From Vitrella brassicaformis CCMP3155 (lineage: Eukaryota > Protista > Chromerida): DNA of 64,000 nucleotides. Made by a program: the position numbers and the translations under genes. Shown here in pieces: positions 20,719 to 61,608 of this stretch. The notes beneath the pieces were generated by a model. The model searched no databases and was not told the DNA's origin. It worked only from the letters and a program-made list of their open reading frames with translations. Each line of letters opens with the position of its first letter. The first letter of the stretch is position 1. The DNA is taken from the NCBI GenBank assembly GCA_001179505.1, contig CDMY01000040.1:141155-205154 (forward strand), read 5' to 3'.

Positions 20719-21651
20719 CCAGAGATAGACACAGAGGGGCTGGTGATTGAGATCGAAAAAGATGAGGGGAGGGTGAGAGGGAGGAAAGGCGGGCATTCAA
20801 TAGAGGGAGGCAGGCATGCCATCTGTTCATACCCACCTCTTTCTTTCTCCCCACCCACCTTTTTCTTTCTGTGGGCTCACTCTGGCCGACCACGGACACA
20901 CACGATGGGTGCGCGGGTTTAGCCGAGAGGCGACCAGCAAGTATTTTATGGGTGGGTGGATTCATGTTTCTGGCAACTGTTGGTTGGTGTGCGCATACCC
21001 GTGGGCGGTGTCCAACACATGCGAATTGGGCATGTGTGGGTCTTCACTCACGCAGGCTGACCTCTGACGGCTTTACTTATCGTGGTACGGGGTGGGAATT
21101 AGGGGGAGGGACTTGCCTTGATGCACAATTGTTGCAGCCACAGACGTGCTGATTCCTTCTACTTGTGGGCGGTGCATGACACACACGTGTTGACCAGAAT
21201 CCACTGGTCTGTCTGCTGCTTGATCCATGTGCACCATGTGTTGTCATGTGCCGTGAGGTCGTGCATGTGCCGCGTGGCTGCGTGGGGGCTGTCTGCCGGT
21301 CAGTTATGCTCGAATTGGGAGCGACGGCCGATCGACTGGCTTCCTCGCCCACGTGCACACGCATGAGGTGTATGAGGGTGCGTGAAGCCATCGTTGGGGA
21401 GGACAGAGGGAAACATTGGGGATACATGGGAATGAGAGCACTGAAACAACTCCATCGTTCACAACACCGAATCAAATTTGACCAACAAGAACGAAAGAAC
21501 GAGCCACAGGCTTCAGGTAGATGCATGCACGGACGGCGAAGTTCGTCTGTTCTCATAGACCAGGCGGCTAACTGATCCTCCATGCATAACAGGCAGGACA
21601 CACAGCGAAATACGAGCCCATTTGTCTGTCTGCCTCTCTGTCGGAGACCAC

Positions 21652-22556
21652 TCAAACGTTCTCAAGCACGATTCGCGATATGTCGCTCTTGTCACCCTGT
21701 TGGCACATCATGACGATGCTGGCGGCCACGTCGTCGGCTGTCAGAAATTTCGATATGTCCTTGGCGCCCGGCTCCCAGCCACCCCTTGCCCTATCCTCCC
21801 ACCAAGGAGTCGCCACACCTACCCGCACAAACATATGTGCAGATTAGTCCTCCCCCTCCCCCTCACCCTCCCTTGTTTGTGTGTACCTGCTGGGTTGACT
21901 GTACCGATTTTGACGCCACTCCCCTTCAATTCGCACCTGGCGCTCGCGACCAGCCCCTCCACGGCATACTTGCTTGCACAATAAATGGCGCCCGTCGGCC
22001 CAGCCCGGATGCCCTTGACTGATGATGTAACGACAATCTGTCCGTGACCTTGCCGCCTCATGACTGGCATCAGCCGCACCAGAAAGAGATACACGCCCCT
22101 CACGTTAGTCCGCAGCACCTCGTCCAGCTCGGCCACAGTCGTGTCGACAAGAGCACCCGTCCCTCGCCCAATTCCCGCGTTGAGGATGGCCGCATGGATA
22201 GTCTGCGAGTGCGACAGGCATTCCCGCATGAGCCGCTCGCAGTCGGCCTCGGCGGCAACGTCGCCGGATGACTCGTGTACGTGGAAGGGAGGCCGAGAGT
22301 CGCCGTGCGGCTCCTCCTGATGGATGGCGCGGCACGCATCAGCCACTCTCTTCAGGTTTGCCTCATTCCGGCCAGTCAGGAAGAGGCTATATCCCTCTCT
22401 CGCCAGCAGCTTCGCCGTGGCCTCCCCGATGCCGCTGCTCGCACCTGCATGCATGAAAACACACACACTCAGTGACACACAGTGAGATCTCAGGTGGACC
22501 CTTGCTGTGTAATGCAACGCAGGCGGCACCGCACCTGTGATGAGCGCATACTTCAT
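21652..22556 (-). CDS. Classical short-chain dehydrogenase/reductase (SDR), 3 exons, intact
   Basis: TG|ASSGIG (TGxxxGIG NAD(P)-binding motif), NAGIG, catalytic S...YCASK (YxxxK), VNPA|GVATPWW; stop at 21652. Confidence 0.95.
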
Positions 22557-22622
22557 CGCTTTTCTTTCCTGACACGAAGCAGAGAGAGCTCACACACATG
22601 CGTGGGAGAGCGAGGGTCAGAC
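22369..22622. repeat. 254-bp direct repeat, copy 1 (SDR 5' region)
   Basis: Matches 25941-26194 with a single substitution seen (agtgacacac vs agtgacacgc). Confidence 0.95.
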
Positions 22623-25600
22623 TTCCCTGTCACTCCTTCGCGGCTCGCGTGTTTGGTGAGTGTTCTCCCCCATGAAAAGAGGCACCCAACATGCAGCACA
22701 GATACGCAGCATGCAGCACTCGCGCCATCCCCCTGCCGCCTTTCTCCTGCCGCGGTCGGTGGATCTCCATGGCTGCTCTGGTATGCCTTGCTGCCCTCGT
22801 GGTGGATCTCTGGATGCGTTGCGCCGCCAAGACGACCTCATTCATGCATCTGATGCCATCGGATGGGAGAGCGAGAACGCCATCAGTGTTGCGAGCAGCG
22901 CAGAGGGCCAGGCGACTTCCAGCTGCCCTCGTGAGCCGAGAAGGCGCGCAGGCGGACGACAGAGGTGCGTGGCGTGGCGACAAGCAGACAGGCAGGGAGG
23001 GAGGCAGGCAGGCAGTCAGGGACAGTCAGGGACAGTCAGGGACAGGCAGGCAGGCACAGGCAGGCAGCCATGCATGCGTGTGCGTGTGACTGCCTGCCTC
23101 TGTGTGTTTTTGCTGCATGATGCAGGTGGATTCCCATTGACAATCACAGCTGACGACCTCATCCCTGTCAACCAGCTCATCGACCCATCGGCACTGCGTG
23201 AGACAAACCGACTCGTGGTGCTCAGCGGAGACGGACAACGACGAGAGCCTGCCAAGTACATCGGCCAAAATGTAATCGGCGTTACGGCGACCCCTGCTAG
23301 CATCACTGCCCTCCTCAAGGCGAGGGACAGCGGCCCTTTCAGGGTTGGGCCCACGGTCGTCACACGCTTCTCACGCGGAGGAAAGACACGAATGCTCAAG
23401 GAAATCGCCAAGCAGCTGCGAGCGGCGAAGATTCCGGTGCTGCCGATCACCTTCAACGACGAAACGTCACTTGACCCAAAAGAGAGCAGTAGCAGGACAC
23501 TCATCGAGTCGATTCTCCTGCGGATCGGGTGGTCGGCGGCCAAGAACGAGACAATTGAGGCAGTGGGGAAAGAGCTCGGCAAGGAGGTTGTCAACTTCGG
23601 TGTGTGGGTCGGGGCCGTCAGCGTCACCGAGGAAGTCATCCTGCAGTGGCTTGGCGACAGGCCCTGTGTTCTGATGATCGATGAGTTGAATCAGCTGCTG
23701 AAGAAGAAGACCCCGTATGTCGAAGGATCGCCCGAGGCGATAGTCGCAGCATATCTCAAGACCAACTGGCTCGGTCAGCCGGATCGCTTTCTGGTCTTCT
23801 CCAGCCATGTGCTGACGACCTCGACGAATCTGCAGGGGTTCTGGGTCGCGGGCTTGGGCGATCGCCCCATGCAACAGCTGCGAATGCCGCTGATCGAGAA
23901 CGTCGCCGAGGCGAGAGAGGTCATCAGCGATGCTGCCGACGAAGGCCAGATGTGCTGGGTTGGACGGGCTCCTGGCTTGCTCATGGACCTCTATCATCGA
24001 GACCCTCGCAACGCTGATCCGGCCAATGTCCTGCGGAAGGCCAAGATGATGCCTTCCGGTGCCGATGCGCCATCCGCCGTTGGTGTCATCAAGATGGCTC
24101 TCGACGGCAACACCATGTGGGCTCAGACTATTCCCGACTGGCAGAGGTGGATGGACATCTATGGAGACAACTGTGTTTGGCCACCTTGCTATTTGGGCGC
24201 TGCCTGCACCAAGGTGGCCAACAGCCCGGCGGTCGAGGAAAAGTTTGGCGGGGCCTTCTGCAGCGGGTTGAGGGCCATCGAGAATTTCCTGGACAACCTG
24301 CACACACAGCCGCGAGAGTCTGGCAAGCGATGGGAGGGCGTTGCGGCGGCAGGGGTCCTCCTGCGGTTGCTCGAGAGCCACATCAGCTACACCACTCAAG
24401 GCAAATATCCGATCGGCTTGACACCAGAAGCACAAGCGCTCCTGCCCCCTGATGTTGTGAGGGGATGCAGCTTTGGGGACTATGTGCTGGCCGTGTCGCA
24501 CCCGGATCGCGAGATCAGGACGCTTCGGCAGCTCATTGACTACTTCAACGACAGCAACAGCCCCATCCGCAGGGTGGACAAAGGTGTCGCGGCATTCTTC
24601 GTGTTGCCCACCCATCTGCAGTTTGAAGGCCACGACTTCTACATCTTCATCACTGTCGACGGGCAGCTGACTGAGGTCCGGGGATACCAATGCAAGCAAG
24701 GATTCGCGAAGAAGCCAACCCCAGCCAGTCTCGAGAAGATTGCCCGTGCATTTCGCGACGCCTTCGGTCCTGGCGGGGGCAAACCGGGCGGTGGGAAGGA
24801 GCCAGCCCTCGACGGCCTGCGCACGACTCCATTGTGCAGGACAGTGTGGTTTACGGGGGATTCAGGCGGAGGCGAGGACGAGCGGAATCGCAAAGACGAA
24901 TACGACCTGACGGACAGTGAGGGTGTCCCGGTACGTTGGCCTTCACAGGCCACAATGAGCTGCCTGGTAGGGTTCTCGCTGGCATTGACCTGTCCCTTTG
25001 AGTGGTTGGCGTAGAGCGTGCAGGATGGAAGAGTTTTAGTTAGACATTTCGCTCTTTTTCGCCTTGCTGGACTATTGCTGGACTATTGCTGGGGCAGCTA
25101 TCGTTTTCTTGCTACGAGCTTTCGGAGGACTTGATTGATGCCAGTGAATAAATCGAATCACCTTGAGACAAACACAGACAAGCGGGCCGCTTGACAAAGT
25201 GACACAAACGCTGACCACGACAGCAGTCAACAAATAAAGGCTCAACACAGCGTACATCCATGCACATACGTGGCCGCACACGTGAGGGACAGACAAGGAG
25301 TCCCGCCCGCCACACCTCCTCCATGCACTACCAACGCCTCCTACCCGCCACAGCAGGCGTCCCTTCCACACAGACAGCACTAACAGGCCGCCGGGCCTCC
25401 ATCAAGCGCTCAGATCACAGACACGCCACACGCACACACGGCAACCAGCCACCCAACGCAGCAGCAGCAGCAGCAGCAGCAGCAGCTTAGCCAACAGAGG
25501 GGGAGGGAATGGGGGAGGGGGCGGCGATGAGGGCAGCGAGCTGACATATGGCCACCGTCACGACCCAGGTCACGAACACAGGAAAGAGGTTGTATACAAA

Positions 25601-25940
25601 TAGGCACCCTTGAGCACCATCGCATACACGACCGCAGCCACGCCGGCGCCAACAGCCACAGCCACCTGGCCGCCCCCGAGCTTGTCCATGGCCCCCTCGA
25701 AGACACGCTGCCGAACCAGCACGTAAAAGCATATCATACAAACGGAGAAGGGGTAGAAGGATGCTGGCGGGGGCGGCACCGAGAAAGATGTGAAACCCGA
25801 GACCCATCAGCATGCCGATTTCTCGAGAGAGCGCTCGAACCAGAAGCACGCCGAGATGGCCGTCTCGCCAACAAGAGCGCCCCAATCTGCGTGGCGCAGC
25901 AAGAACACATGCAGTCTCTTCATCTGTTCCTGACTGGTCG
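22623..25940. mobile_element. Candidate 3.3 kb inserted or captured segment between the 254-bp direct repeats
   Basis: Flanked by near-identical duplicated host sequence. Carries an NTPase-nuclease gene with a 1.9 kb uninterrupted exon and a degenerate gene fragment. No TIR, LTR, RT or transposase seen, so mobility is inferred only. Confidence 0.4.
22769..25014 (+). CDS. P-loop NTPase plus PD-(D/E)XK (QxK-type) nuclease, Crinkler/RHS-like architecture, with N-terminal signal-peptide-like leader; 694 aa, join(22769..22964,23126..25014)
   Basis: Walker A variant RFSRGGKT (23365-23388), PITFND, Walker B LMIDE (23671-23685), C-terminal PTHLQFEGHD...GYQCKQG (D at 24634-24636, QCK at 24688-24696). 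The 161-nt repeat-rich intron gag|gtgcgt...tgcag|gt joins in phase 1. Confidence 0.75.
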
Positions 25941-26128
25941 CGGCCAGTCAGGAAGAGGCTATATCCCTCTCTCGCCAGCAGCTTCGCCGTGGCCTCCCCG
26001 ATGCCGCTGCTCGCACCTGCATGCATGAAAACACACACACTCAGTGACACGCAGTGAGATCTCAGGTGGACCCTTGCTGTGTAATGCAACGCAGGCGGCA
26101 CCGCACCTGTGATGAGCGCATACTTCAT
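25487..26128 (-). pseudogene. Truncated SDR copy (MKYALITG|ASSGIG...LFLTGR) fused to a degenerate hydrophobic coding fragment
   Basis: Identical SDR N-terminus up to 25941, then unrelated hydrophobic stretches in changing frames (IGMLMGLGFHIFLGAAPASILLPLL; VAVAVGAGVAAVVYAMVLKG; YNLFPVFVTWVVTVAICQL). Confidence 0.7.
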
Positions 26129-26194
26129 CGCTTTTCTTTCCTGACACGAAGCAGAGAGAGCTCACACACATGCGTGGGAGAGCGAGGGTCAGAC
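25941..26194. repeat. 254-bp direct repeat, copy 2
   Basis: Matches 22369-22622. Confidence 0.95.
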
Positions 26195-26461
26195 CTGCAA
26201 GGCAATCTTCTCATGACTCAGATCTGCGTCAGTTCAAGATGATGCGACAGCTCCGGATCTGTCCCAACATGAAAACACGCACCCAAACATGCAACACAGA
26301 CAGCAGCGGGGCAGCTGCGTCGGGGCTTCAGGGGCCGAACTGCGAGCTAACGTAAAAGGGTTAAACCTTTACCCTAGGCGCACAATACCGAGCGCATCAG
26401 ACGTCTGATCTCCGACTTACTTACGGCGTCAGTGGCTTTCCTCTGCTCGTCCAACAGCATC
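26195..26461. promoter_or_regulatory. Likely bidirectional promoter between the SDR 5' end (minus) and the FAM161-like gene (plus)
   Basis: Short (~270 bp) head-to-head spacer containing the telo-box-like aaagggttaaacctttaccctagg. Confidence 0.35.
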
Positions 26462-39994: not shown

Positions 39995-42900
39995 CAAGCT
40001 CGCAGTTGCAGACAATGAGCTCCGCAAATCTTGTGTGTTTTTGTGAAGTGGAGGTCGCCGAGAGGCAAGAAAACTCAGGCCCACATCTCGGCTGCGACCG
40101 GCAGCAGCTGAGCAAAGAGGCCCCACAAGCGCGGCCGAGCGACGAGGGAGGAGGTGCTGCAGAGGGCAAGAGTGGCCGGCGCCCGGAACCATTCGACGAA
40201 GAAGACGATGAGTGTCACGGAATCGTCGGAAAGCAGCCTGGCAAGCAGCCGAGCATTTGCACCAGCCACGGGAGCGGTGAAAATTGGCCGCCTGAATCGC
40301 CTGGATCGCCGACAGATGGGCATGATGTGGACGAGCGGGGCGAGTGGAGGACAGAGGCGAGGAAGCGTAAAGAGATGGTTGCTCATTTCCACGAGGGGGC
40401 AGGCAGCAAGTTGGCGGCCTACGAAGAGTTTCCCAGTACCCTTCGATACGAGACGCGAGTCAACGACAGCGGGGAGGTCGAAGAGAAGCTTGTCGGGATA
40501 GCGTTCACTCCCGAGCCTTTCATCAACACTGCACGGAGAGTCGCTCGTGTCCTTTTCTTTCAACTTGCAACTGCATTGGTCTTTGCAATCGCATGGGCGC
40601 TCTTCTGTCTGGGTAAGACAAAGCCAACTTCACATGCAAGGAAAGAAGATGTATCTGGACGGATGCCATCATGACTGTGCGTTTATGTAAGGTTGCTGGC
40701 CGATGTGTGAGTACAAGAGCTTCAGTCGCGGGGTGCCGTGGATAGTACTTGATTTCCTTCGTGTGCTGCTTATCTATGTTGAGTATACCGCCGCCGCACT
40801 CCTAATGGCCGAAGGGGATGGAAGACTAGCTTTGCGACGCCTTGTCTCGTGCGGGTGGATTTTTGTGCCTGGCGGACTCTTTTTGTTTTCAAGGGCGGTG
40901 GTGCACCACTTTTTCGGAGGATTCAGAGTCCTATACAGAACTTACGTGACGCCCCCCGCGGCGTTTGTCGTCACCTTCCCTTTGGCGTTCATCTTCTTTC
41001 GCTTCAGCGCCCACAGGAATAAGACCGTTATGCGGCACAGGAAGATGATCTATTCCTCCCAGCTGACGGTGATATTTTCTTCACAACTGTCACTCGCAAT
41101 CGTCATGTAAGTAAATGCCGATATCAACATTCGATGTTGGCCTGCCTTTTGTCTTTCTCCGTCAGCCGAATATTTCTCCTCCCCCTGGCCACGGGAGACA
41201 CGACCGATGGGGAGCGGACACGAGTTGCATTCGGTTTCCTACTGATCACGTGGCCATTCCTTGGACTAGGTACGTTTGTTATGAGATGATGCTGATGTGG
41301 CCGCGACTGCCTAGCCGTTCTTACCAATCAGTGACGGCCACCAATCGGGCTATTCGGGACGGATCAGCACTGCAGACAGCACCATGTCTCGCCTTTGGGG
41401 CTGTTGCGCATGCTTTGTTTCCTCGCATGTAAGCAGCGCCCGAGTGAGAGACGAATATACGTGATCCATTGTTCTACAGGCTTCAGTCAAAAATGGCATT
41501 GCTTTCGCCGCATCAAATCCTGACATCTGTCGCTCTCGGGTAAGGTCTGCCTGACATATTGGCCCCTGCCATTCGGTGCTCTGTCCAGGTGCTTCGACCT
41601 TTTTACAGACATCGCGATTCCATATTGTATGCAAGCATCGATATATTGCATTCCAAATCATGTCTCTTCACGATTCTTCTTGCGTGAGCAGGTGTTCTCA
41701 TTGGTGGCGCGAGCAGCAGGCTATTCATACGACTGGTGGCCCGCTTCAAGCCGAACCAAAGGGAGACGCAAGATCAGCACGCCGATGCTGTCGACATTAT
41801 TGCCGTCAGGGATGAGAGCAACAGCGATCGAAAGCCCGGCCCTCGACTGAGTCGTCTTTCCACGAGGGCGGCATCGTACCGCCGCTCGAAGAGTGCGGCA
41901 TTCGATCGCCTCCGCTGCATGTTAAGCCGCTCGTCGCTTGCATCCCACCTGAATACGATACTTGACGCGCAGTCCAAATTCGTGACGTCTGGGTACCATC
42001 CCATGTTCCTTCGTCGACTCAGCGACGTGAGCACTTGAGAGCATATGGGGAAAACAACGACGGGAAGAGCCCTGCATTCCACCCATGTATGTCTCCTCTC
42101 CCTGTTGATTGAGTACAGCAAGTCTATTTGTACGGCCTGGCGGAGCTGACCGCACTGGTACGAACACAGGCAGGGAGGCAGGGAGGCAGGGAGGCAGGGA
42201 GGCAGGTAGGCAGGGAGGCGATGCATCCGTTCTGTCACCTTACTTACAGATCTTCTCCAATTTGTGCTCCATCATCTTCGAACAGGTGCTGTGTGTGGAC
42301 GTGCAGTATGCACACGTGCCTGATATGTGTTTCGTCATGCAGATGTTGTCTCCATCTGGCGAGCGGTTGGCGGAGAGACTGGCCGGCCTGGGGGTCCTTG
42401 TGCTTATCGAGATGAGCCTCGAATTCCTACTCTTCTGCGTGAGCTACATAGCTCTTCATTAAGCCTCAAACACAAGGGCAATTCCATCCATTCACTATCT
42501 GCCTGGGTGTGGCTGGCTGTCTTGTCTTGGTGCGTTGGATGCAGTACATGGTTCGTGTGATCAATTTGCCATTGATCAGGAGCGAGAGGGAGCCGAAGGC
42601 CGTGAGGATGCGACTCATGGGCATGTTCTTCACGGGCAGCATCTGTGTCGTACACGGTGCCTCACACATGGTCATGTTCGTTTTGCAGTCGTTGGACAGA
42701 GAGGCATATGGCAGTGTGGAACTGCGCGACTACTGTCCGCACGACTCTTTCCTCTTGCGGAGACACATGGGGGCATAATTGATTGAAATCAGCCAGCCAG
42801 CCAGCGAGTGAGTGAGATATCCGTATGCCGTGCCGTGCTCGGCTAAGTCAAGAAGCGGCCGGCTGTCGCCAAGGTTTTCATGTCTCATGTAGGTAGGGCT

Positions 42901-43216
42901 GATTTTGGCGAGTGGTGCCCGAGGCCTCACGTACTAGGACTTAATTGGTTGTAATTGGCGAGGAAGCGGAGCTTCGGTGTCGAATCGCTCCATCTCACCA
43001 ATCTCAGTTGTCTGCGTTCGTGCGATGAGTGAGACTGCTGCAGGCGTTGCACGTCAATGAGCGGTTCATCCACACACACACTGTCAAGTCAGTCGGCAAA
43101 TAGAGGACATCCAAAAGTCGTGTCACTACCATCCATCCATCCATTGCACCCTGCCATGTGGTTCCTCAGTCACTCCCCATCAAAAGCGATGCACTTTGCC
43201 TGTCTATTTCACCCAC
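39995..43216 (+). repeat. 3.2 kb segmental duplication, copy 1
   Basis: Colinear with 58376-61608, from aagctcgcag to ...gcactttgcctgtctatttcacccac. Identity is about 90% by eye (not computed). Confidence 0.95.
40015..42778 (+). CDS. Polytopic membrane protein (~10-11 predicted TM helices), paralog A, family unknown
   Basis: The reconstructed exons join in phase: VLFFQLATALVFAIAWALFCL|GCWPMCEYKSFSRGVPWIVLDFL...|IRIFLLPL...AFGFLLITWPFLGL|...|GCFDLFTDIAIPY|CVLIGG...|QVYLYGLAELTAL|IFSNLCSIIFEQ|...LIEMSLEFLLFC|YMVRVINLPL...RRHMGA*. Confidence 0.8.
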
Positions 43217-43297
43217 GACAGGCAAAGTGGAAGGATGTCCTCTATTTGCCGACCGACTTGACAGTGTGTGTGTGGATGAACCGCTCATTGACGTGCA
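43048..43297. repeat. 65-bp inverted repeat (43048-43112 / 43233-43297) plus nested 13-bp inverted repeat (43192-43204 / 43217-43229)
   Basis: The long arms match at 64/65. cactttgcctgtc / gacaggcaaagtg is perfect. The right-hand arms start exactly after the duplication endpoint at 43216. Confidence 0.92.
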
Positions 43298-44109
43298 TCG
43301 AAAAAAGGTAGTCGGTGGCCAAGCAGACAGGCAGACGGGATGATGTGGCCTCACTGCCATCCATCCATCCATCCATGCCTGCTTTGCATGCAGCTCACAC
43401 CGACGTGCCCACTCAGTGACAATGTGCAGGCAGGCAGACAGGCTGGCAGGGAGGGAGGGAGGGAGGGGGTGGGGTGGGTGGTCTGTGCGGTTGGCTACTT
43501 GTGGGTCACAAATCCGCGGAACGTGCGATACGCAAGGTTGTCTAGGGCCACTGCGGACACGCAAGGTTGTTCATGTCCACCCACCCATGCCTTGTCTGCC
43601 CCTCCCTCCCTCTCTGCACATGCCTACACTGCAGACGGTTTTTTTTGCGTTTTAGAAGACCTTCTTGAACGGAAGGTCTCGTGGCAGCGTGTCCAGCGTG
43701 TGCAGCGTGATGATGTTGTCACGCAACGAACGATCCGCCACGCCAATGCGAAGCCCATACCTGACACGTAAGGCAACGCACACAAACACACAGACACACA
43801 GACACACAAACACACAGGCAGAAGGAAACGGGATCAGAGACCACCTTGATGCGTCTTGTCTTGTCTGTCTTGTTTGATGCTGTGTTGTGTCTCTCCCAGG
43901 TCTTCCAATGCAAATCCGTCATCGACTGTCCACTGACCATTTCAGTCAGCCACAAGGCAGATACCACGGAAAGAAAACCAACCAGGCATCAGACACCGCC
44001 ACACTGGCATCCCTTCTGTCTGTTGGTTGGTTGGCCGTCTCCGGTAGTCAGTCGTCCTTGCAAAAGTAAAAGTACCTTTAGTCGTCCATCCTTAAACCTC
44101 TCACATCGG

Positions 44110-52981: not shown

Positions 52982-53089
52982 GTGAGCGAATGCACGATTC
53001 TCAGGATAAATAAAGGTGTACGTGTCTTTTGTCGTGTCAATATGTCAATAGAACGATCTCCCATTTTCGCGGTCGGTGATCAGCGAGTC

Positions 53090-53167
53090 AAGAGGCCTGC
53101 CTAGAAAGCGAATGAAGGGGCGATAGAGACCAGCCTTATCCATATACTGTCGACTCTGTGTGTGTTA
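53090..53167. repeat. 78-bp inverted repeat, left arm
   Basis: Its reverse complement matches 57078-57155 at 75/78. Confidence 0.93.
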
Positions 53168-56815: not shown

Positions 56816-57109
56816 GTGCATGGCGGATGCCGGCTTGCCTCTGAATATTTCTCTCGGTCGATCCGACTCGATCGGCTGCATGCGGTTAGCTGCGGTTTTC
56901 CTCAGGACAGGACACGCACACCTGCAAACGCTGGTTCATGTGCAGCACAGTGCCTGGCAATTGACGCGTGCAGAGCTTTCACGCGGGCCGAGAATGTAGA
57001 CAGATTTTGGATGTCCAAATGCATTCTATTCAAGAACGTGCGGAACGGGGGGAGCTGGCTCAGTGTTATTTCGGCAGTAACACACACAGAGTCGACAGTA
57101 TATGGATAA
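56816..57109 (+). pseudogene. PAN/Apple domain exon, paralogous to the one at ~48110-48330
   Basis: RTRTPANAGSCAAQCLAIDACRAFTRAENVDRFWMSKCILFK aligns with KTRTAADPSDCAAQCLAIEACRVFAWAEEPDELVEPKCHLFK. The ORF ends inside the inverted-repeat arm. Confidence 0.75.
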
Positions 57110-57155
57110 GGCTGGTCTCTACCGCCCCTTCACTCGCTTTCTAGGCAGGTCTCTT
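57078..57155. repeat. 78-bp inverted repeat, right arm
   Basis: Reverse complement of 53090-53167 with 3 mismatches. Confidence 0.93.
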
Positions 57156-57399
57156 CACGCCGATAGTCGCGCAATCATCTACGCATACTCAGAAAAAGAC
57201 AAAAGGCATTCAATGTCATTGCATTGTATGCATGTCAGACAAACGAAGAAGGGTGCACACAGTAGACAGATCTACGACAAATACTGCAGCATGGCAAGAA
57301 ATGGATTGGACTCAATACACACGCACGCACACACACACACACACACACACGAGAGAGAGAGAGAGAGAGAGAGACTCACGGCACGGCCTCAAAGCTCCT

Positions 57400-58375: not shown

Positions 58376-61300
58376 AAGCTCGCAGGGCTCGAAAGGATGC
58401 TCGAAACCCTGCAGACAACACAATGGCTTCCACAGATCTTATGTGTTTTTGTGACGTGGAGGTCGGCGAGAGGCAAGAAAACTCAGGCCCACATCTCGGC
58501 TGTGACCGGCAGCAGCTGAGCGAAGAGGCCCCACAGGGCTTAGCGCGGCCGAGCGACGAGGGCGGAGGTGCTGCAGAGGACAAGAGTGGCCGGCGCCCGG
58601 AACCATTCGACGAAGAAGACGATGAGTGTCACGGAATCGTCGGAAAGCAGCCTGGCAAGCAGCCGAGCATTTGCACCAGCCACGGGAGCGGTGAAAATTG
58701 GCCGCCTGAGTCGCCTGGATCGCCGACAGATGGGCATGATGTGGACGAACGGGGCGAGTGGAGGACAGAGGCGAGGAAGCGTAAAGAGATGGTTGCTCAA
58801 TTCTACGAGGGGGCAGGCAGCAAGTTGGCGGCCTATGAAGAGTTTCCCAGTACCCTTCGATACGAGACGCGAGTCAACGACAGCGGGGAGGTCGAAGAGA
58901 AGCTTGTCGGGATAGCGTTCACTCCCGAGCCCTTCATCAGCACTGCACGGAGAGTCGCTCGTGTCCTTCTCTTTCAACTTGCAACTGCATTGGTCTTTGC
59001 AATCGCATGGGCGCTCTTCTGTCTGGGTAAGACAAGGCCAACTTCACATGCAAGGAAACGAAGATGTATCTGGACGGATGCCATCATGTTTGTGCGTTTA
59101 TGTAAGGTTGCTGGCCGATGTGTGAGTACAAGAGCTTCAGTCGCGGGGTGCCTTGGATAGTACTTGATTTCCTTCGTGTGCTGCTTATCTGTGTCGGGTA
59201 TTTCGCCGCCGCACTCCTAATGGCCGAAGGGGATGGAGGACTGGCTTTGCGACGCTTTGTCTCGTGCTGGCAAATTTTTATGCCTGGCACACTGTTCATG
59301 TTTTCAAGGCCGGTGGTGCACCACTTTTTTGGAGGATTCAGAGTCCTATACAGAACTTACATTGAGCCCCTTGCGGCGTTTGTCGTCAGCTTCCCTTTGG
59401 CGTTCATCTTCTTTCGTTTCAGCGCCCACAGGAATAAGACCGTTGTGCGGCACCGGAAGGTGATCTATTCCCTTCAGCTGACATTGATGTTTTCTATAAA
59501 CGCGTTACTCGGAAGCGCCATGTAAGTGTGTGAAATGCCGATGTCAGCATTCGATGTTCGCCTGCCTTTTGTCTTTCTCCGTCAGCCGAATATTTCTCCT
59601 CCCGCTAGCCACGAGAGACACGACCGATGGGGAGCGGACACGAGTGGTATTCGGTTTCCTGCTGATCATGTGGCCACTCCTCGGATTAGGTACGTTGGTT
59701 CTGAGATGATGCTGATGTGCACGCACATCTCCTTATCCGTTCTTACCAATCAATCAGTGACGGCCACCAATCGGGCTATTCGGGACGGATCAGCACTGCA
59801 GACAGCACCATGTCTCGCGTTTGGGGCTGTTGCGCATGCTTTGTTTCCTCGCATGTAAGCAGCGCCCGAGTGAGAGACGAATATACATGATCCATTGTTC
59901 TACAGGCTTCAGTCAAAAATGGCATTGCTTTCGCCGCATCAAATCCTGACATCTGTCGCTCTCGGGTAAGGTCTGCCTGACATATTGGCCCCTGCCATTC
60001 GGTGCTCTGTCCATTCTTCGAACAGGTGCTTCGACCTCTTGACAGACATCGCGATTCCATATTGTATGCAAGCATCGATATATTGCATTCCAAATCATGT
60101 CTCTTCACGATTCTTCTTGCGTGAGCAGGTGTTCTCATTGGTGGCGCGAGCAGCAGGCTATTTATACGGCTGGTGGCCCGCTGCAAGCCGAACCAAAGGG
60201 AGACGCAAGATCAGCAACCCGATGCTGTTGACATTATTGCCGTGAGGGATGAGAGCAACAGCGACCGAAAGCCCGGCCCTTCACTGAGTCGTCTTTCCAC
60301 GAGGGCGGCATCGTACCGCCGTTCGAAGAGTGCGGCATTCGATCGCCTCCGCTGCATGTTCAGCCGCTCGTTGCTTGCATCCCAGCTGAGTACGATACTT
60401 GACGCGCAGTCCAAATTCGTGACGGCAAGGTACCATCCCATGTTCCTTCGTCGACTCAGCGACGTGAGCACTTGAGAGCATATGGGGAAAATCACGACAG
60501 GAAAAGTCATGCATTCCATCCATGTATGTCTCCTCTCGCTGTTGATTGAGTACAGCAAGTCCATTTGTACGGCCTGGCGGAGCTGACCGCACTGGTACGA
60601 ACACAGGCAGGGAGGGAGGCAGGGAGGGAGAGAGGTGATGCATCCGTCCTGTCACCTACTTACAGATCTTCTCCAATTTGTGCTCCATCATCTTCGAACA
60701 GGTGCTGTGAGTGGACGTGCAGTATGCACACGTGCCTGATATGTTTTTCGTCATGCAGATTTTGTCTCCATCTGGCGAGCGCTTGGCGGAGAGACTGGCT
60801 GGCCTGGGGGTCCTTGTGCTTATCGAGATGAGCCTCGAATTTCTGCTCTTCTGCGTGAGCTACATAGCTCTTCATTAAGCCTCAAAGATAAGGACAATTC
60901 CATTCACTCACTATCTGCCTGGGTGTGGCTGGCTGTCTTGTCTTGGTACGTTGGATGTAGTACATGGTTCGTGTGATCAATTTGCCATTGATCAGGAGCG
61001 AGAGGGAGCCGAAAGCCGTGAGGATGCGACTTACGGGCATGTTCTTCTCGGGCAGCATCTGTGTCATACACGGCGCTTCAAACATGGTCGTGTTCGTTTT
61101 GCAGTCGTTGGACAGAGAGGCATATGGCAGCGTGGAACTGCGCGACTACTGTCCGCACGACTCTTTCCTCTTGCGGAGACACGTGGGGGCATAATTGCTT
61201 GAAATCAGCCAGCCAGCCGTGCTGTGCTCTGCCAAGACAAGAAGCGGCCGGCTGTCGCCAAGGTTTACATGTCTCAGGTAGGTAGGGCTGATTTTGGCGA

Positions 61301-61608
61301 GTGGTGCCCAGGTCTCACGTACTAGGACTTCTTGGTTGTAATTGGCGAGTAAGCGGAGCTTCGGTGTCTGTTTCGCTCCACCTCACCAATCTAAGTTATC
61401 TGCGTCGGTGCGATGAGTGAGACTGCTGCAGGCGTTGCAACTCAATGAGCGGTTCATCCACACACACACTGTCAAGTCAGTCGTTAAATAGAGGACATGC
61501 AAAGTTCGTGTCACTACCAGCCATCCATCCATCCATTGCACCCTGCCATGTGGTTCCTCAGTCAGTCCCCATCAAAAGCGATGCACTTTGCCTGTCTATT
61601 TCACCCAC
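58376..61608 (+). repeat. 3.2 kb segmental duplication, copy 2
   Basis: Colinear with 39995-43216. Confidence 0.95.
58423..61194 (+). CDS. Polytopic membrane protein, paralog B
   Basis: Same exon structure and splice sites as 40015-42778; ends ...LLRRHVGA*. Confidence 0.8.

Follow-up and report, generated by a model that had tools for sequence, protein, structure and literature searches.

A direct repeat of a dehydrogenase gene 5' end with a probable repair-type junction beside a Crinkler/RHS-type ATPase-nuclease gene in Vitrella brassicaformis

Introduction

The toxin modules of Crinkler/RHS-type (CR) proteins have been proposed to descend from transposon proteins. According to PMC5289972, where the work of Zhang et al. 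2016 is summarised, the commonest C-terminal CR architecture is an NTPase combined with a restriction endonuclease (REase), and CR proteins are also found in free-living eukaryotes. Here, we analyse a locus of Vitrella brassicaformis CCMP3155 in which the gene for a 694-aa protein of this type lies on a 3,318-bp segment between two nearly identical copies of the 5' end of a short-chain dehydrogenase (SDR) gene. The window, i.e. the whole stretch of 64,000 nt that was analysed, is C40:141155-205154 of a host assembly of 72.7 Mb in 1,064 contigs, and positions are those of the window unless a contig is named. An earlier reading of this DNA, in the following called the original prediction, took the segment for a candidate mobile or selfish cassette; we lean towards a different view, namely that the SDR 5' end was copied next to a gene that was already there.

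The 694-aa protein has the two-domain body of CR proteins in common, as an AAA+-type ATPase with Walker A and Walker B motifs is followed by a domain of likely nuclease fold with the motif E...D...QxK, and like CR proteins it belongs to a family that is lineage-expanded, large and, in Vitrella, partly decayed. In contrast to CR proteins, it has no recognisable header but carries a short hydrophobic/basic leader on an exon of its own, and, Vitrella being a free-living, coral-associated alga, a role as effector is only putative. Archaeal ATPase_2 proteins (PF01637; PAB2304/2qen and SSO1545/2fna) resemble it in their arginine-containing Walker A motif and in the fold of the N-terminal two-thirds, whereas the Vitrella family is eukaryotic, has sequence scores below the Pfam thresholds and possesses a C-terminal domain that is matched by fold only.

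In that host sequence is directly repeated to the left and right of what looks like an insert, the locus recalls the target-site duplications of DNA transposons and long interspersed elements (LINEs). However, 254 bp is far longer than known DNA-transposon duplications, and the segment lacks defined ends, a transposase, a reverse transcriptase, poly-A and further copies. Closer parallels are offered by alternative end joining and microhomology-mediated break-induced replication, with which the locus shares a nearby template, a snap-back patch lying inverted exactly at the boundary, and, at one of the junctions, microhomology. That end-joining junctions can undergo snap-back templated synthesis is established (PMC4912351, PMC2943611, PMC5728401), but the copied tract of ~280 nt is long for end joining and nearer to replication-based template switching.

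Results

The 254-bp direct repeat

Repeat finding, pairwise alignment and base-by-base comparison agree on two direct repeats of 254 bp, termed R-A and R-B, which are identical at 253 of 254 positions and form the only repeat pair of their kind in the surrounding part of the window.

21819..22556, minus strand: 5' exons of the SDR gene (ATG at 22556; intron ~22445-22532; PF00106)
22369..22622, no strand assigned: R-A, native SDR 5' end, which runs on into the intact SDR reading frame
25941..26194, no strand assigned: R-B, orphan SDR 5' end; in the minus-strand frame 25487-26128 the SDR start codon is followed by unrelated sequence

Starting 66 bp ahead of the SDR start codon, the repeat runs through exon 1 and an intron of ~88 nt into exon 2, as far as the LFLTGR codons, and the minus-strand open reading frame (ORF) at 21819-22556 matches the Pfam family adh_short with 5.1e-36. 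The sole mismatch, A at 22479 versus G at 26051, is located inside the SDR intron. Thus, the 3,318-bp segment between SDR copies differing at one base, as described in the original prediction, was borne out by all three comparisons. The recency of the event, which had been concluded from the single mismatch, is not proven, because gene conversion would yield the same picture.

Downstream of the SDR 5' exons, 222 nt (21226-21447) are 88% identical to C659:27088-27319, an isolated short duplicate.

The junctions

25924..25957, no strand assigned: near-palindrome of 34 nt centred on the repeat boundary 25940/25941, 15/17 complementary
25892..25931, no strand assigned: junction zone, end of a membrane-gene fragment followed by an SDR-derived 11-mer; local alignment of 29/41 with 22325-22363

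The left arm of the palindrome (25924-25940) repeats the opening 17 nt of R-B in inverted form, with 15/17 positions matching. It is the best zero-spacer palindrome of the window, as 25940/25941 is the only one of ~64,000 positions that reaches 15. A palindromic patch of 18 nt (25923-25940) stands in place of 14 native SDR nt, and to the left of this patch an 11-mer colinear with SDR exon 2 survives (10/11). On its left side the repeat lacks a sharp edge, as colinear similarity continues for ~45 nt through the junction zone (29/41, p ~0.003), and the final 12-15 nt of the membrane-gene fragment show microhomology to SDR 22326-22337 (10/12). The total SDR-derived block is thus ~280 nt long, with microhomology at its join to the membrane-gene fragment. 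No further colinear similarity was detected past these ~45 nt leftward or past a 40-nt element rightward, and for the sequence just after R-A, templating from the repeat was not significant. A Helitron-type 3' hairpin was considered as source of the palindrome and ruled out, one arm being SDR exon sequence.

Judged from the sequence, these features, which are typical of break repair, point to synthesis-dependent microhomology-mediated end joining or to replication template switching and not to a staggered cut made by a transposase. They also bear on the question whether the repeat is real. In a short-read assembly of this many contigs a 254-bp repeat might be misresolved, e.g. by threading a separate or circular molecule of cassette plus repeat into the SDR locus, and a repeat-bearing circle or a tandem array would give the same assembly graph. 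However, the 64-kb window contains no run of Ns, the repeat copies differ by one base, and a palindromic patch together with microhomology at the R-B junction is not something that an assembler invents, so that an artefact of this kind seems very improbable to us.

We favour, by a modest balance of probability, a single repair or template-switch event, mediated by microhomology and dependent on synthesis, in which ~280 nt from the SDR 5' end were copied to a place 3.5 kb away beside a resident CR-type gene. The donor needed for such a local copy, R-A, is present 3.3 kb away; a donor for the 3.3-kb cassette is found nowhere in the assembly. As to the order of events and the enzymes, both of which we infer, we speculate that a broken or stalled 3' end would have arisen within the membrane-gene pseudogene and would have annealed via the 10/12 microhomology to SDR exon 2, ~3.5 kb off. 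Error-prone synthesis would then have proceeded toward the SDR promoter, a single snap-back giving rise to the palindromic 18-nt patch, and would finally have returned to the original template. The encoded nuclease would not be required at any of these steps.

The segment between the repeats

The 3,318 bp between R-A and R-B encode P0001, annotated as an unnamed 694-aa protein of V. brassicaformis CCMP3155, and carry the following features.

22769..22964 (196 nt), plus strand: exon 1, leader of the 694-aa protein, matching the P0001 N-terminus; hydrophobic, then basic
22979..23077, no strand assigned: CAGG-type microsatellite within the annotated intron, with many low-complexity matches across the genome
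23126..25014 (1,889 nt), plus strand: exon 2, predicted AAA+ ATPase plus restriction-endonuclease-fold module, from sequence and fold searches
23365-23388 and 23680-23682, plus strand: Walker A and Walker B Asp in exon 2, from sequence motifs
24334-24336, 24634-24636 and 24688-24696, plus strand: putative nuclease residues E, D and QCK in exon 2, from alignments
25496..25906, minus strand: frameshifted, internal fragment of a membrane-protein gene (residues ~150-288), matching the C502 ORF

The 411-bp membrane-gene fragment is 83% identical in nucleotide sequence to C502:47226-47646, an intact paralogue with an ORF for a multi-pass membrane protein of 419 aa. Relative to this paralogue it carries indels of 10, 2 and 2 nt, the protein match is split across two frames, and both ends of the parent gene are missing. 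As an unrelated, frameshifted gene fragment lies inside it, the cassette is a mosaic rather than an element with ends of its own. On the far side of R-B, where membrane-gene homology would have shown R-B to be inserted into the membrane gene, no such homology was found.

The minus-strand frame at 25487-26128 is open for 213 aa, leading from the orphan SDR start codon in R-B into the membrane-gene fragment; it might yield a chimeric or an antisense transcript on the strand facing the ATPase gene's 3' end.

A genome-wide DNA search revealed no second copy of the cassette in the 72.7-Mb assembly. Only three pieces match elsewhere in the genome, i.e. the microsatellite, the 411-bp membrane-gene fragment and ~118 nt of the ATPase exon. 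The latter piece (23260-23371) is copied to C422 (L033, C422:47918-51035, positions 1501-1618) with an identical core of ~90 nt and 91% identity overall, so that short ectopic copies of gene fragments do occur in the Vitrella genome. The C422 copy stops just short of the Walker A codons; a different repeat, 260 bp long and present at least 40 times in the genome, has its end ~140 nt away.

The same observations have to be considered for the opposite direction of events, in which a 3.3-kb fragment was caught at a break in the SDR 5' end whose strands had been cut ~254-280 nt apart, in a one-off repair and not by transposition. The duplication would stem from fill-in of the long overhangs, and the palindrome from snap-back synthesis during end joining, so that repeat, palindrome and microhomology are accounted for alike; moreover, the cassette ends with the end of a truncated membrane-gene fragment, just as expected for a random broken fragment. 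However, neither donor nor second copy is present in the assembly, i.e. the source must have been excised or lost, the diverged C422 fragment suggests long residence of the ATPase gene, and more events are needed than for a local copy of 280 nt. We thus regard capture of a fragment as rather unlikely, although it merits more weight than the other alternatives discussed here. The segment itself is, in our estimate and with a slight preponderance, ordinary chromosome that harbours a resident member of an old family and an old membrane-protein pseudogene fragment, and not a mobile unit.

A dispersed repeat flanks both copies

26258..26302, plus strand: core fragment of a dispersed repeat just past R-B, at least 32 genomic copies of ~90% identity
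22671..22710, no strand assigned: degenerate copy of the dispersed repeat just past R-A, 34/40 versus the R-B-side fragment, z ~12

The dispersed repeat (loci L042-L052) is ~250-300 bp long and rich in CATGCA-type motifs, and may be a SINE/MITE-like element, i.e. similar to short interspersed elements or miniature inverted-repeat transposable elements, or a promoter-bearing repeat. Its fragments lie 48 nt past R-A and 73 nt past R-B, and the spacers of 47 and 72 nt cannot be aligned. For both local fragments, a plus-strand start codon follows ~60-170 nt downstream, that of the ATPase gene and that of the next plus-strand ORF (26432), respectively, and a third fragment of the dispersed repeat is found upstream of the C757 paralogue. 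The two local fragments have in common some states that are absent from the family consensus.

The fragments at both flanks could be a promoter-linked coincidence, or else what is left of a larger duplication of greater age, with gene conversion having made its core uniform again. In the latter case ~400 bp, comprising the SDR 5' region and a dispersed-repeat fragment, would have been duplicated long ago, the flanks would have diverged, and only the 254-bp core would have been converted recently. Such a history agrees with the colinear similarity of lower identity that flanks the core to the left (29/41) and to the right (34/40), and with the common states outside the family consensus. However, the spacers to the right of the core do not align, the palindromic patch fully accounts for the differences in the left flank, and the similarity in the right flank is confounded by the element being dispersed in at least 32 copies. 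We therefore consider an old, partially converted duplication improbable.

Paralogues of the ATPase-nuclease gene

A search of the Vitrella genome itself yielded 76 matches at about three dozen sites, with protein identities to the 694-aa copy of at most ~40%. Many paralogues are decayed, containing in-frame stops or being fragments, and one cluster lies on C345. Between some of the paralogues, DNA identity amounts to 78-95%, with gene-sized homology (2.0-2.9 kb) and unrelated flanks; the closest dispersed pair (~95% nucleotide identity) is part of a larger duplication. Self-comparison of 29 paralogue stretches with ±1.5 kb of flank, which would have held repeats placed as at the target locus, revealed no bracketing repeats. 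Neither terminal inverted repeats, poly-A, target duplications nor common ends were found among the paralogue pairs. The cassette itself is not enclosed by terminal inverted repeats, and position 25940 lacks poly-A. LINE-type retroposition was ruled out, as the repeat includes an intron and upstream sequence and poly-A is missing. A metagenome scan with a 30-mer from the repeat detected no other Vitrella-like contig.

The ATPase-nuclease body resides on one large exon in L002/L012, L004 and P0003, while the N-termini differ, being a signal-like leader, a Coilin_N/ubiquitin-like domain (Coilin_N-type in the paralogue P0003, 2e-9) or none. The homology between L002 and L012 starts at a splice acceptor. 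As far as can be read from the gene sequences, this suggests that headers may be swapped by exon shuffling in this family.

These results allow an assessment of the original prediction that the cassette may mobilise, or may be inserted at breaks which its own nuclease has made, with very long staggered duplications as the result. A selfish element of this kind would be in line with an ATPase and a predicted nuclease fold that retains E...D...QxK, with the intron-free big exon that is spread over many contigs and with the palindromic junction, which could mirror a hairpin intermediate. Nevertheless, there is no second copy, paralogue pairs share no terminal repeats or ends, and the 29 paralogue stretches with their flanks of ±1.5 kb, where further long locus-specific repeats had been expected, contain no bracketing duplication, i.e. 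paralogues sit in ordinary contexts, which had been named in advance as speaking against mobility. Furthermore, the most similar dispersed pair belongs to a larger duplication, an unrelated pseudogene fragment is on board, the junctions are of the repair type, and the left edge of the presumed target duplication is fuzzy and of the microhomology type. Self-mobilisation of the cassette is thus highly improbable in our view and not upheld. The statement that no known transposase is present holds, as neither a transposase nor a reverse transcriptase domain was found by Pfam, PADLOC or NCBIfam.

The encoded protein

The 694-aa protein with its three motifs (Walker A RFSRGGKT, Walker B LMIDE and D...QCK) and the 1,889-nt exon are present as described in the original prediction. 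Searches were made with each of the two exons on its own. Exon 2 matches the Pfam families AAA, ATPase_2 and AAA_16, all below the gathering thresholds, and weak ATPase_2 matches were obtained for 5 of 12 family members. A profile search against the Protein Data Bank (PDB) yielded AAA+ matches only, also sub-threshold, and comparison of exon 2 with PADLOC, NCBIfam and PDB sequences gave no match.

An AlphaFold model based on 12 family members reached a predicted local distance difference test score (pLDDT) of 77. In Foldseek, the N-terminal two-thirds matched best to the archaeal ATPase_2 proteins 2qen (PAB2304) and 2fna (SSO1545) with E 3.6e-5 and prob 1.00, followed by DAP3, ORC/Cdc6, RFC and STAND ATPases. 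At the family level, the placement among AAA+ ATPases thus rests on the fold of this model, with Walker A and Walker B being present.

The C-terminal 235 residues were modelled alone (pLDDT 76). The VIA-align list for this model consists almost entirely of nucleases with a restriction-endonuclease fold, e.g. McrC (Z 5.9), SgrAI, FokI, VC1899, Can2, Card1 and MspJI, at modest Z values of 4.5-5.9 that are below the safe zone of the tool, and Foldseek returned nothing at E<=1e-3. In the putative nuclease motif E...D...QxK the Glu in the first helix is conserved and the Asp near-invariant, whereas a Gln replaces the second acidic residue. E, D and QxK are kept in most paralogues and in distant relatives, and Walker A and Walker B are conserved in the family, too. 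Based on the model, a restriction-endonuclease fold of the C-terminal domain is likely.

By exhaustive profile search, relatives were found in 715 clusters at E<=1e-3 and in 154 clusters at E<=1e-30, with Chromera velia and a Nitzschia diatom among the named ones. The Nitzschia protein P0032 carries the Crinkler N-terminal domain PF20147 (29.6 bits versus a cut-off of 24.6), which was found in 3 of 37 relatives with N-terminal extensions, SAM or BRCT domains being found in others. Neighbours in a language-model atlas are hypothetical proteins from Mucoromycota and Rhodophyta and a Crinkler cluster (score 0.95). For the 694-aa protein itself, no Pfam match to a header domain was obtained with exon 1 or the start of exon 2.

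Altogether, the AAA+ fold, the REase-fold matches with their modest Z values and the PF20147-bearing relatives support the original assignment to the NTPase plus REase-fold class, i.e. the 694-aa protein is a further member of the known CR NTPase-nuclease family. Where this assignment was to be confirmed by profile hidden Markov models, the NTPase part stood in the form of weak, sub-threshold ATPase matches in Pfam; for the REase part, support came from the fold only.

Discussion

The finding at this locus is real but ordinary in kind. What gives it interest is that the repair scar can be read with unusual ease and that, in a chromerid, the CR-type family has become so large and so decayed. 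The competing explanations differ mainly in polarity, and several points weigh against a local copy of the SDR 5' end. A single strain without outgroup does not fix the polarity, and the four junctions would also fit a cassette that was inserted into the SDR 5' end. The right junction at 26194/26195 has no testable microhomology and is uninformative. Furthermore, the same dispersed repeat is present in both right flanks, which a local copy has to take as coincidence or promoter-linked bias, and the flanks of the paralogues were covered to ±1.5 kb only. On the other side, several family-A DNA polymerase genes in the genome, of which one may be theta-type, speak for such a copy.

If the cassette were mobile, it would represent a new class of mobile elements and would directly support a "transposons to toxins" origin of Crinkler effectors. 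A CR-type gene that is, or was until recently, on a DNA segment integrating via long staggered cuts or via a hairpin or circular intermediate, made by its own nuclease, would be a living link between transposon proteins and CR toxin modules; we give this idea very little credence. As a local copy, the locus would be a clean, datable case, in a chromerid alga, of templated duplication via microhomology that is marked by a snap-back scar. To our knowledge, DNA repair pathways in chromerid algae are essentially unstudied. A further contribution of the locus concerns the family of CR-type ATPase-nucleases, which in this free-living relative of apicomplexan parasites is large, in decay and apparently header-swapping.

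Other repeats in the window

Two further repeat pairs were observed in the window. Positions 40012-43216 and 58420-61608 form a direct duplication of 3.2 kb with 92% identity and with short inverted pieces at 43045-43300, and positions 53087-53167 and 57078-57158 constitute an inverted repeat of 81 nt with 95% identity.

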